DNA from: Magallana gigas
Taxonomy: Eukaryota
Assembly: GCF_963853765.1 (NCBI RefSeq)
Contig: NC_088855.1
Coordinates: forward strand, 37,572,001-37,636,000
Length of the DNA stretch: 64,000 nucleotides
Direction: 5' to 3'
Both the position numbers and the translations under genes were made by a program. Shown here in pieces: positions 22,879 to 27,343 of this stretch. The notes under the pieces are model-generated. The model saw nothing but the letters and a program-made list of their open reading frames with translations. It did no database searches and was not told where the DNA came from. Positions within the stretch are counted from its first letter, which is position 1. Every line of letters starts with the position of its first letter.

Positions 22879-22894
22879 CAGAGGCGTAGTCACA
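22879..22894 (+). repeat. Left TIR, copy 1
   Basis: Perfect reverse complement of 27328-27343. Confidence 0.97.
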
Positions 22895-23607
22895 GGGGGG
22901 GCAGCGGGGGCACTAGCCCCCCCACTTTCAGATATGGGGGGGCAAGAGTATGTCTGTGCCCCCCCCACTTAATGTCGAACAAAATCACAGCTATGTTGAA
23001 ATATTATATTAAACCATTATAACAGTTCTCATTTTATGGCAAATTTATTTTATTTTCAGCAACAACTGAGTAAGCATTTCTCTTGAAGTAATAGTAATGT
23101 ATAGTAATTAAATCTGTCGAGACCTCTTGTGTTCGCATGTTTGGGATAGGGAGTGCGGGTCATAAATTTGACCTAAGTTTAGACGTTTCTGTTTCACTCA
23201 GCATCTGTTATCTAACAAAATTACATTAGAGGTACAAGCTGCCCCTTGTGCTGACATCTAAAAGTCATTATTTATTTGCTGTATCTCATTTCTTGTTTAA
23301 CACATAGGCCGTGAAGTAAGATTTGTCAAACCTCTGGATTTTTTCATTATTTGCTGATTCATTAGTGATTATATGCTTGCAGTCTGACCATCTCTTTCAA
23401 TCAGTAAGTTTTTATGATTATTTTGTTTTGTGTTATTAGCAAAATGATTAAATTGATATAGAATTAATACATCATAGATGAAACTGTTGTATAAGACCAC
23501 TCATTCACGCTATTCTGGAGTTAACAAATTGAAATATTAATGTTACTGTAACTAAAACAAAAATCAAGTTAAATCTATTTGAACACCTGGAATTTTATTT
23601 CAGAACC

Positions 23608-26600
23608 ATGAATGAACTTGACAATTTATTGTCAGCAATGAAGATAAACGATGAGGACTCTGTGGTAAGCATACGTTTAAAACATTTGCGAAGAGTCCAG
23701 GGTGATTCGTGTCAACCTGATTATGAAAGACTCCAATCAGATAAATTAGCGTCAATGTTAATTCCCTTGGAAATAAATGTAGATGAAGGTGGCCAACAAG
23801 CCCTGAAATGCACGGGAAATGGAAATTGCTTATATAATAGTGCATCACTTGTGCTCTGTGGAGATGAGCATTTGTCCACAAGTCTACGCATTTTAACTGC
23901 TTGCGAACTCTTCAGCAATGGACAATTGTACACAGATCATCCTGCTCTAGAAACTGTCATCAAGAACCCAGAATTTATGTCTAGGAATTTAAATGATGCC
24001 AGAGCAATGATATTTCCTACAGCTGAGATTAGCAGTGAAAATGAAACCAATGTGAGAAATGTTGCACTTTCTACATGTACAGATAGGGCATGGTCTGGTT
24101 TAATACATATCATGGCATTGGCCACAGTTCTCCAACGCCCTATATACTCTGTTTATCCTGAGGTTAATATGGGAATCAGGCCACTTTTCAACAATTTATT
24201 TTACCCAGTAAGTTCAAATGAAGTAAATGAAGGGCACATTGAGATTATGTATATCATGTGGTCTAGAGATGGCAATTTTGATACACGTGATGGTGCTTTG
24301 TTTGAACCAAATCATTTTGTACCACTCGTGAAGAAACAAACATCAGTACATCAAAAAAGAAAACTGTCAGAAAGTCCACAGAAATCAAGAAAAAAAGTTA
24401 AGCAACAGAAATCCATAAGTTCTTTCTTTCAGAAAAAGAATAAAACATCCGAGAAACAAACTGAAGGTATGAAACCTTCAACATTTACAGCATATAAAGA
24501 AAAATCAATTTTAATCATACATAATGAGACAGAAAAAATGGACATTAAATCCGATCAGAGTGACAAAACAAGCACGCTGTATGAAGAAAAATGCCAAGTC
24601 ATAGAAGATAAGAATTCTGCCGAAGAGAACAGCAACAAGGAAAGTGCACAAAAAATTATGGAAGGGGAAATAGTACAAGAAGAAAAACAGAATTTAGTTG
24701 ACACAGAAAATACAGAGTTTATCGATTCATTGGCTGACGAAAGTTGCTCTGAAAAAACAGCACTCGCAGATGACTGTGCAGACATTTGCTGTACTGGTAA
24801 CACTCCATTTCAACCACGTGATAAAGCCATACTACAGCAAACAAAAGTCACAATAAAGAGAAAGAATAAAACCATAACAAGAGCTGTTCAAGGGAATTGG
24901 TTTGATGATTTTCCTTGGCTTACACTTTGCACAACTAGAAAAAATGTCTTCTGCTTTTTCTGCAGAAAGGCTGTTAAGAGAAAAGTTTTGATGCTGAGTA
25001 AAAATGCGGAATTGGCCTTTTCTAAAAATGGCTTTTCAAACTGGAAAAAGGCCATGAATCGTTTCAGGGAACATGAAAATTCATCAGCTCATAAAGAGGC
25101 AGAATTAAATATTAGGAGATTGCAAAGTGGTGCCATGGCTGTAAGTGAGCAGATAGAGAAAAAGGAACAGGAAGACCAGAAGAAAAGACGATTGGCACTC
25201 TCCTGTCAGTTGTCTTCCTTGAAATTTCTATTACGACAGGGACTTGCAGTCAGAGGACACAGTGAATCTGAAGGTCACCTCACTCAGCTACTTAAATTGC
25301 GAGCTGAAGATAACCCAACAATCTTGTCATGGATTGAAAAGGGGAGATATGTTTCTCCAGAAATTGTGAATGAACAAATTTCTCTGATTGGACTGGAAAT
25401 TTTGAGATCTGTGCTTGATGATGTAAGACAGGCAAAATGGTTTTCTATTATGGCAGACGAGACTATGGATGTTGCATACAAAGAACAGTTAGTTGTATGT
25501 GTCAGATGGGTTGATGACAGCTTCAATATTCATGAAGATATGTTAGGTCTTTTTGAAATTCATTCACAAACAAGTGACTTTATAGCTTTGGCAGTGAAAG
25601 ATGTTCTTATTAGAAGTGGTTTGCCCTTAGAATTATGTCGGGGTCAGGCATATGATGGTGCGCCAAATATGTCGGGACACTTAACAGGTGTAGCAAAACA
25701 AATCCAGAACCAGTATCCATCTTCCATTAGCGTCCACTGTTTTGCTCATTGTATTAATCTTAGTGTTCAAGATGTTACCAAAAAATGTTCCGCAATACGT
25801 GACTCAATGGACTTGGTCACTGAAATTGAAAAACTTATTTGTCTATCTCCAAAGAGAAAACATCTCTTCATGCAAAAGAAATTGCAAGAAACAAATCTTA
25901 GTTCACCAAACCTCAGACCAATTTGTCCAACTCGATGGACTGTTAGAACATATGCTATAGAATCTGTAATTCAGAACTACAAAGTTCTACAGGACGTTTT
26001 AGATGACATACATACTAATACTAATGATGAATACTCCAGACGAGCAGGTGGACAACTGGCTATGATGGAAAAGTTTTCAACATATTTTGGATTGAAGCTA
26101 TCACACTTAATATTTGCTGCATCTGAGCAGTTATCCATTTCAATCCAGGGGAAAAATACTTCAGCACAGGATGCTATCAGAGCTTCAAAAGCCACTGTAT
26201 CCTACTTTGAGCGCCAGAGAAATGACTCTGTGTTTTCTGACTTTTATGATGCAGTTTGTGCAGAGGCAAAAGACCTGACAGACGAACCAACACTTCCAAG
26301 ATATAGGCGTGCCCCCAAAAGATTAGATGATGGATCCAATCCCCATAGATATGACAATCCCAAGGATTACTTTAAACAGCAGTTCTTTGAAGCATTAGAA
26401 CAAGCTGTAGGCACTCTTGAAAACAGATTTGAACAAAAAAACATGACCATCGTCAAGGAAATCGAATCACTTTTGCTAAATGCAGCAAATGGAGAGTTGT
26501 TTTCTGTGTCTGAAGAAATTGCCATGCTTTACAAAGATGATATTTCTTTTCCAAGGCTTGAACAGCAGCTCAAAATGTTGCCTGATATTTTCAAAGTTGA

Positions 26601-26931
26601 CAGTGAAAATGAAATCAAAAAAGTTACCTTGATAGATACAATTTGTCAACACATGAAGGAGCCTATCACAAAGAAACTTCTGTCAGAAGTTACGAAGCTT
26701 GTACAAATTTATCTTACCATTCCAGTCACAACTGCCACACCAGAAAGATCTTTTTCGTCCTTAAGGAGGATTAAAACCTACCTCCGAAGTACAATGACGC
26801 AGGCAAGATTGAATCACTGTATGACTTGCTTTGTTCACAAAGAGAGAACAGACCAAGTCAACATCAAAGAAATAGCAAAGTCATTCATCCAGAAGATTCC
26901 AAGTCGGAAACTGTACTTTGGAAACTATTAA
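23608..26931 (+). CDS. hAT transposase (1,107 aa) with N-terminal vertnin-like OTU protease domain, PIP-box motif, TTF-type zinc finger, DDE core and hAT C-terminal dimerisation domain
   Basis: OTU-like: GNGNC74LY, ALATVLQRPIYSVYP, IMWS, PNH236FVPL. PIP: Q267KSISSFF. Zinc finger: WF..FPWL, C449-C452...H489-H495. Core: FSIMAD617ET, RGQAYD683GAPNMSG, C711FAH714, TRW777, E1046RSFSSLRRIKTYLRSTM. Confidence 0.95.
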   Translation: MNELDNLLSAMKINDEDSVVSIRLKHLRRVQGDSCQPDYERLQSDKLASMLIPLEINVDEGGQQALKCTGNGNCLYNSASLVLCGDEHLSTSLRILTACELFSNGQLYTDHPALETVIKNPEFMSRNLNDARAMIFPTAEISSENETNVRNVALSTCTDRAWSGLIHIMALATVLQRPIYSVYPEVNMGIRPLFNNLFYPVSSNEVNEGHIEIMYIMWSRDGNFDTRDGALFEPNHFVPLVKKQTSVHQKRKLSESPQKSRKKVKQQKSISSFFQKKNKTSEKQTEGMKPSTFTAYKEKSILIIHNETEKMDIKSDQSDKTSTLYEEKCQVIEDKNSAEENSNKESAQKIMEGEIVQEEKQNLVDTENTEFIDSLADESCSEKTALADDCADICCTGNTPFQPRDKAILQQTKVTIKRKNKTITRAVQGNWFDDFPWLTLCTTRKNVFCFFCRKAVKRKVLMLSKNAELAFSKNGFSNWKKAMNRFREHENSSAHKEAELNIRRLQSGAMAVSEQIEKKEQEDQKKRRLALSCQLSSLKFLLRQGLAVRGHSESEGHLTQLLKLRAEDNPTILSWIEKGRYVSPEIVNEQISLIGLEILRSVLDDVRQAKWFSIMADETMDVAYKEQLVVCVRWVDDSFNIHEDMLGLFEIHSQTSDFIALAVKDVLIRSGLPLELCRGQAYDGAPNMSGHLTGVAKQIQNQYPSSISVHCFAHCINLSVQDVTKKCSAIRDSMDLVTEIEKLICLSPKRKHLFMQKKLQETNLSSPNLRPICPTRWTVRTYAIESVIQNYKVLQDVLDDIHTNTNDEYSRRAGGQLAMMEKFSTYFGLKLSHLIFAASEQLSISIQGKNTSAQDAIRASKATVSYFERQRNDSVFSDFYDAVCAEAKDLTDEPTLPRYRRAPKRLDDGSNPHRYDNPKDYFKQQFFEALEQAVGTLENRFEQKNMTIVKEIESLLLNAANGELFSVSEEIAMLYKDDISFPRLEQQLKMLPDIFKVDSENEIKKVTLIDTICQHMKEPITKKLLSEVTKLVQIYLTIPVTTATPERSFSSLRRIKTYLRSTMTQARLNHCMTCFVHKERTDQVNIKEIAKSFIQKIPSRKLYFGNY

Positions 26932-27032
26932 CTATAGTTTTATTAAGACTGTTCTCTTTCAGTTTGGTTTCCAAGAATTAAGTATTGAATTATCTAAGGA
27001 CTCTTCATTTTCAAACCTACATGTATAAGTTT

Positions 27033-27038
27033 AATAAA
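27033..27038 (+). other. Candidate transposase poly(A) signal AATAAA
   Basis: About 100 nt after the stop codon and inside the element; the AT-rich context weakens it. Copy 2 at 57978. Confidence 0.45.
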
Positions 27039-27245
27039 TTTGTTTTGCATCTGAAAAGTATTCTTTATGTTTACATATATGTACTTTAGAATATATTCTA
27101 GCCATTCCGAATCTCATCAAGATTAGTAATTTCTACAAGATAGCTGCAGTATTGGAGATTCTGATTGTGGTATACCTGTGATGAATGTCAATCAACTTTA
27201 AATGCACTATTTGAAGTCCTCTCATTCAACTTAGACAGGGGCTTG

Positions 27246-27296
27246 ATATTACATGTTTTACATCTTAATTTCTTTATATTACACGTTTTACATCTT
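27246..27296. repeat. Subterminal 21-bp direct repeat ATATTACA(T/C)GTTTTACATCTT x2
   Basis: 27246-27266 and 27276-27296, one mismatch, near the right TIR. Confidence 0.9.
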
Positions 27297-27327
27297 TCTT
27301 GGATTTGAGCCCCCCCACTTTTAAGTT

Positions 27328-27343
27328 TGTGACTACGCCTCTG
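27328..27343 (-). repeat. Right TIR, copy 1
   Basis: Perfect reverse complement of 22879-22894. Confidence 0.97.

Follow-up and report, generated by a model that had tools for sequence, protein, structure and literature searches.

A complete oyster hAT transposon with a 5-bp target site duplication encodes a transposase fused to an N-terminal OTU domain

We analyzed a 64,000-nucleotide stretch of the Magallana gigas genome (NCBI RefSeq assembly GCF_963853765.1, contig NC_088855.1, positions 37,572,001 to 37,636,000), hereafter the window, and found within it a complete hAT-type DNA transposon of 4,465 base pairs (bp) at 22879-27343 (+). The element contains a single open reading frame (ORF; 23608..26931, +) of 1,107 amino acids that joins an OTU domain, a linker, and a hAT transposase. 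A preliminary description of this DNA, made from the sequence alone, had proposed an intact hAT transposon with perfect terminal inverted repeats (TIRs) and an in-frame OTU-transposase fusion, and we recovered these features at exactly the same coordinates. Our overall reading, in which we have considerable confidence, is that of an autonomous oyster hAT with a 5-bp target site duplication (TSD), whose protein combines an OTU domain, a basic linker with a PIP-box-like motif, a zinc finger, and a DDE hAT transposase. The OTU is presumably an active isopeptidase, and the copy described here, which lies in a histone gene array, would be a chance insertion.

The limits of the element follow from the array itself, which is a tandem repeat with a unit of ~8,825 bp comprising H1 (+), H3 (+), H4 (+), H2B (-), and H2A (+). 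Histone units were spaced 13,295 bp apart when filled (two spacings) versus 8,825 bp when empty. The excess of 4,470 bp corresponds to the element plus 5 bp, implying an element of 4,465 bp and a 5-bp TSD, ATGAG. In a base-by-base comparison of filled and empty units, the empty site reads ...GTTGCTATGAGTTGTTGA... and the filled site reads ...GTTGCTATGAG before the element and ATGAGTTGTTGA... after it, such that the sister units differ by the absence of precisely this stretch plus 5 bp. Two copies of ATGAG flank the element at the filled site (22874..22878 and 27344..27348), versus one copy at the four empty sister sites (5225, 14049, 36169, and 44994).

The TIRs are perfect 16-mers with 100% complementarity (22879..22894 and 27328..27343, both listed on the + strand). 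The left TIR reads CAGAGGCGTAGTCACA and the right TIR is the complement of CAGAGGCGTAGTCACA. They start with CAG, a feature shared with many hAT elements. Next to the left TIR lies a subterminal region (22895..22968) with G7C / C7-8AC repeats at 22895-22902, 22917-22925, 22936-22943, and 22959-22968, and a matching C7AC is found near the right end (27310-27318). The motif is absent from the interior of the element, and these repeats are candidate transposase binding sites.

Evidence of mobility came from sequencing data beyond the window. Thirteen Logan contigs, each from a separate sequencing run, carry the element at 99.6% nucleotide identity, and several distinct intact 1,107-residue variants exist among the copies in Logan contigs and in the protein cluster described below. 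Twelve contigs extend into many different flanks, and beyond the TIRs we counted at least nine distinct right flanks and at least four distinct left flanks, and the 2-nucleotide left stubs of two contigs (L008 and L009) also differ from each other. The histone spacer occurs in none of these Logan flanks. Near-identical copies with such varied flanks imply a dispersed element that is multi-copy or polymorphic and has moved recently. We interpret it as an autonomous cut-and-paste transposon, active in the recent past, whose host is the oyster Crassostrea/Magallana gigas or a very close relative. The left TIR is polymorphic at position 22881, where the window reads CAGAGG, with perfect TIRs, versus CATAGG in six Logan contigs (L005, L007-L010, and L012). 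The third base of the left TIR in these copies is T, creating one mismatch to the right TIR.

The protein is also present in RefSeq as XP_034322447.1, 'zinc finger MYM-type protein 1-like [Crassostrea gigas]', which has the same length of 1,107 amino acids and 10 residue differences from the window copy. Its 90%-identity cluster has 190 members, including XP_034322447.1 and a fragment from Saccostrea echinata. An older C. gigas model (P0282; XP_011440505.1, 819 amino acids) has an unrelated N-terminus fused to the present protein, which it follows from approximately residue 318 onward, with the OTU missing. The model reflects either an error of gene prediction or a chimeric transcript made from another copy.

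The transposase part of the protein has the full set of hAT features. It includes a zinc finger of the TTF/C17orf113 type (24910..25107, +; C449, C452, H489, and H495), which Pfam matched as zf-C17orf113 at residues 435-500. The hAT catalytic core (DUF4371/RNase-H-like with an insertion domain) and the C-terminal dimerization region span 25018..26841 (+), with Pfam matches to DUF4371 (residues 471-694, 76 bits) and Dimer_Tnp_hAT (residues 1027-1078, 39 bits versus a cut-off of 21.4). The codons of the core residues were checked and lie at 25456-25458 (D617), 25654-25656 (D683), and 26743-26745 (E1046), and the core additionally contains C711xxH714 and R776W777. When aligned with 23 transposase homologues, D617, D683, C711, H714, R776, H489, and H495 were invariant, while W777, E1046, C449, and C452 were at least 90% conserved. 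All residues named in the preliminary description as marks of a complete hAT transposase (the zinc finger, D617/D683/E1046, CxxH, RW, and the dimerization tail) are thereby among the conserved ones.

We found 754 relatives of the transposase. Its core (residues 430-1107) is 42-63% identical to the 120 nearest cores. A sequence search of solved structures with the transposase part gave no match. The DDE core, CxxH, RW, and the dimerization domain place the element in the hAT superfamily. Its TSD is 5 bp versus the 8 bp usual for hAT, an exception shared with the hAT5 group, and this likeness to hAT5 concerns the TSD length of one insertion.

Residues 1-245 (23608..24342, +) form an OTU cysteine-protease domain with an N-terminal helical extension, as identified by Pfam, AlphaFold2, Foldseek, VIA-align, and conservation. 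Pfam detected OTU (PF02338; MEROPS clan CA) at residues 70-180 only, with 28.7 bits versus a gathering cut-off of 23.3. A HMMER search with residues 1-285 retrieved 1,614 proteins at E ≤ 1e-3, of which 399 reached E ≤ 1e-10. When the OTU sequence was searched against solved structures, the only hits were weak (E 0.6-1.6) and covered the surroundings of the Cys motif in OTUD1 and OTUD7B, which made a comparison of folds necessary. The AlphaFold2 model, built on an alignment of homologues, had a pLDDT of 90.5 and a pTM of 0.89. Foldseek matched it in the PDB to the OTU domains of A20, VCPIP1, Cezanne, and TRABID (E 2e-6 to 1e-5, probability 1.00). VIA-align gave Z 13-14 for OTUD3, Cezanne, VCPIP1, A20, and TRABID, or Z 12-14 with OTUD5 counted in. 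Hence, a Pfam score above threshold, a confident model, and Z-scores of 13-14 agree on an OTU fold for the N-terminal part.

Among Swiss-Prot models, the six best matches were all vertnin, covering residues 11-242 at E 5e-14 to 6e-13 (TM 0.66-0.69, 25-26% identity), with A20 well behind at E 1e-6. The description of this OTU as vertnin-like was therefore borne out by the top Swiss-Prot fold match (E 5e-14, TM 0.68). Protein clusters of vertnin also contain transposase-type helix-turn-helix (HTH) domains (HTH_Tnp_1, HTH_23).

The residues expected to carry out catalysis are in place. The candidate triad consists of D45 (codon 23740-23742), C74 (23827-23829), and H236 (24313-24315). C74, in the GNC[LF] motif, aligned with the catalytic-Cys motif of OTUD1 and OTUD7B, and H236 aligned with the His of a canonical OTU domain. 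In 79 homologues with the full domain, C74 was conserved in all 79, H236 in 78, G72 in 77, and N235 in 72, and the flanking motif residues N73 and F237 were also kept. The same Cys and His had been proposed as catalytic at the outset. D45 was kept in 54 of the 60 homologues with a residue at that position. It lies ~29 residues before the catalytic Cys, which we take to be the location of the unusual Asp70 of A20.

We next consider how widely the fusion of OTU and transposase recurs. The whole 1,107-residue protein aligns colinearly, in one frame and at 47% identity, with contig L002 of an unrelated run, which has one in-frame stop just before the catalytic His. The identity of L002 to the window protein is 47% in the OTU and 55% in the core versus 29% in the linker. 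This colinearity, together with domains that are more alike than the linker, implies that OTU and transposase have long been inherited together under constraint. Chance fusion of the ORFs of two nested elements was rejected, since the same architecture is present in L002 and in the 190-member cluster.

The same OTU subtype occurs in several other contexts. It is found at 30-37% identity on a distant hAT lineage (P0274, P0275, and P0226; cores ~25% identical) and on a second distant hAT lineage (P0006, P0007 (Paramuricea clavata), and P0146; cores ~20% identical). It also occurs on a piggyBac transposase (P0009), on Helitron Rep/helicases (P0012, P0013, P0182, and P0251; 33-37% identity), and fused to DUF7869 (P0008 from Mytilus coruscus, and P0178), an uncharacterized domain that may be another transposase. 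Twenty-nine further mid-length members of the OTU family include four with a hAT-type zinc finger and one with DUF4371. In one protein of 1,221 amino acids (P0134), this OTU type is repeated three times in tandem ahead of an LRAT (NlpC/P60-like) domain.

Closer to the window protein, three of the 120 nearest cores (P0038, P0046, and P0097) have an N-terminal OTU of another type, which is compact and canonical. Pfam scored OTU at 45-54 bits in P0038 and P0046, and at 19.8 bits in P0097, which is under the 23.3 cut-off. The OTU of P0046 is 20% identical to that of the window protein (pairwise E 0.006). A maximum-likelihood tree grouped the window protein with its nearest relative, P0014 (678 amino acids, 63% identity), and with P0015/L002 at a support of 99. 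P0038 and P0097 were on a neighboring branch and P0046 was elsewhere in the clade, its placement being unsettled, with OTU-less proteins in between. The tree is unrooted, and the direction of OTU gain or loss is not readable from it. Overall, OTU modules seem to have been gained, lost, or exchanged repeatedly at the hAT N-terminus.

A broader scenario would treat the vertnin/A20-like OTU as a mobile, catalytically competent cassette that was picked up repeatedly by three hAT lineages, piggyBac, Helitron, and DUF7869 proteins. The cassette would have been placed before an ancestral PIP box, allowing the transposase to ride PCNA and edit ubiquitin marks at sites of replication or repair, with vertnin as its domesticated dead descendant. 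As a whole, we offer this scenario tentatively and think it rather doubtful. Considered separately, vertnin may descend from an OTU-transposon protein that was domesticated and lost catalysis.

Several observations weigh against an autonomous element with a 5-bp TSD and an active OTU. The length of the TSD is known from one independent insertion site. It was not confirmed on the Logan contigs, few of which have both flanks, and those flanks mostly disagree (L009, L010, and L014). L008 is the sole contig with agreeing flanks, over two bases. The disagreement likely reflects assemblies that cross the repeated element and join the flanks of separate copies. Most of the 120 nearest cores belong to OTU-less proteins of 680-850 amino acids, which implies that the OTU is not essential for such transposases. 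Many of these relatives are on contigs of 2.5-3.2 kb without room for an OTU, and some of the OTU-less calls may be truncated gene models. Within the OTU, position 71 is Asn, the acidic residue that many OTUs use at His+2 is absent (H236-F237-V238), and the third catalytic residue, D45, is a guess by analogy with A20. Vertnin was classed as an inactive OTU-like homologue in a survey of papain-like proteases (PMC10318531). The activity of the OTU, its substrate, and its role in transposition are predictions.

These features lead to an alternative in which the OTU is a pseudo-enzyme, or a ubiquitin-binding or docking module, and would only anchor the transposase on ubiquitinated chromatin or a host partner. 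It would fit the classification of vertnin, the nearest fold neighbor, as inactive (PMC10318531), the presence of N71 in place of the Asp of the common DGNC motif, and the lack of an acidic residue at His+2. However, position 71 is split in the OTU family between Asp (40) and Asn (33), and the near parity makes N71 a normal variant. The near-complete retention of C74 and H236, as well as of G72, N73, N235, and F237, is expected of catalysis rather than mere binding. We therefore regard a non-catalytic OTU as unlikely, though it carries appreciable weight. Conservation of the Cys and His throughout the family argues for catalysis without proving it, and the OTU is probably an active isopeptidase (a deubiquitinase or related enzyme).

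Directly after the OTU, the basic stretch of the linker contains a PIP-box-like motif, QKSISSFF (residues 267-274; 24406..24429, +), which conforms to the canonical pattern Qxx[ILM]xx[FY][FY]. The linker of L002 has a similar motif, QTRISSFL. The pattern Qxx[ILM]xx[FY]F was also found in seven OTU-less relatives (P0082, P0085, P0088, P0104, P0106, P0115, and P0123), where it is located at residues 3-14 in six and at residues 41-48 in the seventh. An eighth match (P0064) falls inside the zinc finger. By our own rough estimate, these matches in the upstream regions of eight relatives compare with ~0.7 expected by chance. The positions of these motifs suggest an ancestral transposase with a PIP box at its N-terminus, to which the OTU was joined on the upstream side. 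The motif would also lend some footing to the idea that PCNA ubiquitin is a substrate.

The linker also bears on whether the OTU might act in cis as a self-processing protease, cutting a polyprotein to free the transposase, as certain RNA viruses do with their papain-like and OTU-like proteases. Such a role would suit the linker, which is long, weakly conserved (29% identity versus 47-55% in the domains), and probably disordered. Yet it has no Gly-Gly or ubiquitin-like cleavage motif, no published OTU transposon is known to self-process (PMC2836005, PMC11417382), and the OTU-less relatives need no such processing. A self-cleaving polyprotein was consequently rejected as the main interpretation for want of a Gly-Gly site, and we consider it very unlikely.

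We favor a mechanism in which the OTU acts as an isopeptidase alongside the transposase. The transposase would bind the TIRs and the G7/C7AC subterminal repeats, then excise and reinsert the element through the DDE mechanism of hAT enzymes, with a stagger of 5 bp. Carried along in cis by the transposase, the OTU would reach the site of transposition, perhaps through PCNA. There it might strip ubiquitin or a ubiquitin-like modifier off the transposase or off factors of repair and replication, with PCNA being an obvious candidate given the motif. Removal of such marks could favor excision, repair, or stability of the transposase. The particular substrates put forward earlier, H2A/H2B or PCNA ubiquitin, as well as self-protection of the transposase, are speculation.

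The position of the element in the genome had prompted a further proposal. As first described, the element sits in a histone array. We place it in the H1-H3 spacer of an H1/H3/H4/H2B/H2A repeat. The upstream H1 gene lies at 20896..21486 (+; Pfam Linker_histone) and the H3 gene at 27735..28145 (+; Pfam Histone), and 391 bp separate the right TIR from the H3 start codon downstream. A second copy occurs three histone units downstream (53824..58288, +). The two copies are 100% identical over 4,465 bp and share one site and one TSD, implying a single insertion that was later duplicated. Duplication of the inserted unit may have occurred by unequal exchange, or it may be an effect of assembling the array.

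The empty histone units that we compared were 100% identical to each other over 8,825 bp, and identity over 8.8 kb was seen among 14049-22848, 27344-36168, 36169-44993, and 44994-53818. Filled units recur at each third unit with a period of 30,945 bp. The identical units and this period reflect either extreme homogenization with a higher-order repeat or an effect of assembly or polishing. There are two 200-N assembly gaps in the window, at 1649-1848 and 58849-59048, the second of which begins 560 bp past the second copy. This second gap interrupts an H3 gene, leaving the ~625 bp that surround the H3 start in two places (58424 and 59049). Given the identical units and the gaps, the layout of the array and its copy number need caution.

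The earlier proposal was that the element uses the histone array as a safe harbor, that is, as a specialist targeted to or kept in an S-phase-active, concertedly evolving locus, as R2 and Pokey are in rDNA and Dada is in small-RNA genes. The finding of two intact copies within 64 kb of array sequence, at a distance of 391 bp upstream from H3, would be in keeping with this proposal. Nonetheless, the shared site, TSD, and complete identity reduce the two copies to one event, and the copy number may partly reflect assembly given the identical units and gaps. Moreover, the Logan copies have at least nine distinct flanks that are not histone sequence and never include the histone spacer. Independent insertions recurring in the same multicopy target, as for elements of the R2/Pokey/Dada type, were not seen among these copies. 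The safe-harbor proposal did not survive this comparison. Histone specialization is largely refuted, and we give it hardly any credence. The array copy looks like an ordinary chance insertion into the H1-H3 spacer that was then copied with its host unit. As for a domesticated, non-mobile host gene, which the automatic 'zinc finger MYM-type protein 1-like' annotation and the intact ORF might suggest, it is ruled out by perfect TIRs, a TSD, precise empty sites, and near-identical copies with varied flanks at many sites across samples, leaving it virtually no chance of being correct.

The histone-array location was the source of the apparent specialness of this element, and it does not matter to what remains, which is a handle on the old open question of what the OTU does in transposons. 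For about fifteen years, transposases have been known to bear protease domains of the ubiquitin and SUMO systems, namely OTU in Ginger1 and Helitron and Ulp1 in Mutator-like elements, with no function assigned in the literature that we found. The hAT superfamily has been well studied biochemically through Hermes, Ac, and hobo. The element described here offers a clean test system, being compact and intact, with one ORF and evident continuing mobility. Close natural relatives without an OTU, or with another OTU type, make the contribution of the domain directly comparable. OTU-hAT fusions are widespread yet automatically annotated as "ZMYM1-like" or "hypothetical". The data also provide a lead on the origin of vertnin.

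When placed among known hAT elements, the closest parallel by TSD is hAT5, a named hAT group with 5-bp TSDs in invertebrates (Kapitonov & Jurka 2007, as relayed in PMC9004415 and PMC12730594). Both combine a hAT transposase with a TSD of 5 rather than 8 bp. The accounts of hAT5 that we found make no mention of an OTU domain. By sequence, the core is 42-63% identical to hundreds of proteins of the ZMYM1-like/DUF4371 hAT transposases and their domesticated vertebrate kin, from lancelets, hemichordates, sponges, and other sources. Unlike those proteins, which are mostly OTU-less and 680-850 amino acids long, the window protein has 430 additional N-terminal residues.

Other transposons carry OTU domains on different enzymes. 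In some Ginger1 transposons, an OTU or Ulp1 domain stands at the C-terminus of the transposase (Bao, Kapitonov & Jurka 2010, PMC2836005). Like our element, Ginger1 pairs a DDE cut-and-paste transposase with an in-frame Pfam OTU and is found in invertebrates, including the mollusc Aplysia. In contrast, Ginger1 has an integrase-like enzyme with the OTU at the C-terminus, and has other TIRs and TSDs, whereas here a hAT transposase follows an N-terminal vertnin/A20-like OTU. A link of the OTU to ubiquitin and DNA repair was proposed for Ginger1 (PMC2836005), and the same proposal covers OTU and Ulp1 on Ginger1 and Helitron transposases (PMC2836005, PMC11417382). We found no test of this idea on any element in the literature. 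OTU domains also occur on Helitron/Helentron elements (PMC6431247, PMC11417382). These share the OTU subtype and its position upstream of the transposition enzyme, but they rely on a rolling-circle Rep/helicase and have no DDE, TIRs, or TSD. Fungal DNA transposons have furthermore been filtered using OTU as a generic 'accessory domain' (PMC5751038).

Among host proteins, vertnin (VRTN) is the best fold match to the N-terminal 242 residues at 26% identity, including the helical extension. It differs in being a host gene, in being reported without catalytic residues (PMC10318531), and in continuing into HTH and Vertnin_mid domains. Beyond its OTU, the window protein is a hAT core with no HTH_Tnp_1 match in Pfam. 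We read the window OTU as a relative of the vertnin domain and not as a member of the vertnin family. The A20/Cezanne/TRABID/VCPIP1 subclass provides the best matches among solved structures over ~185-200 residues, with a conserved D45. Identity to this subclass is only 15-21%, and the window protein lacks A20-type zinc fingers, ankyrin repeats, and UBX partners.

The linker motif has a counterpart in Pogo (Tc1/mariner-pogo), whose transposase carries a PCNA-binding PIP box and for which PCNA binding is reported to have been shown. Both are DNA transposases with a Qxx[ILM]xx[FY][FY] motif, although Pogo belongs to another superfamily and binding is only predicted here. Regarding novelty, we found no paper on an OTU-hAT fusion or on a transposon origin of vertnin in a search that did not extend to Repbase, Repbase Reports, or Dfam, where the family may well be catalogued. 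The preliminary description was aware of no such fusion. This held for the literature, but not for sequence databases, where the fusion is common and the protein itself is a RefSeq entry. OTU domains on transposons were already known. What seems new here is that the OTU-bearing transposase is a hAT, and that it combines a vertnin/A20-like OTU at the N-terminus with a PIP-box-like motif.

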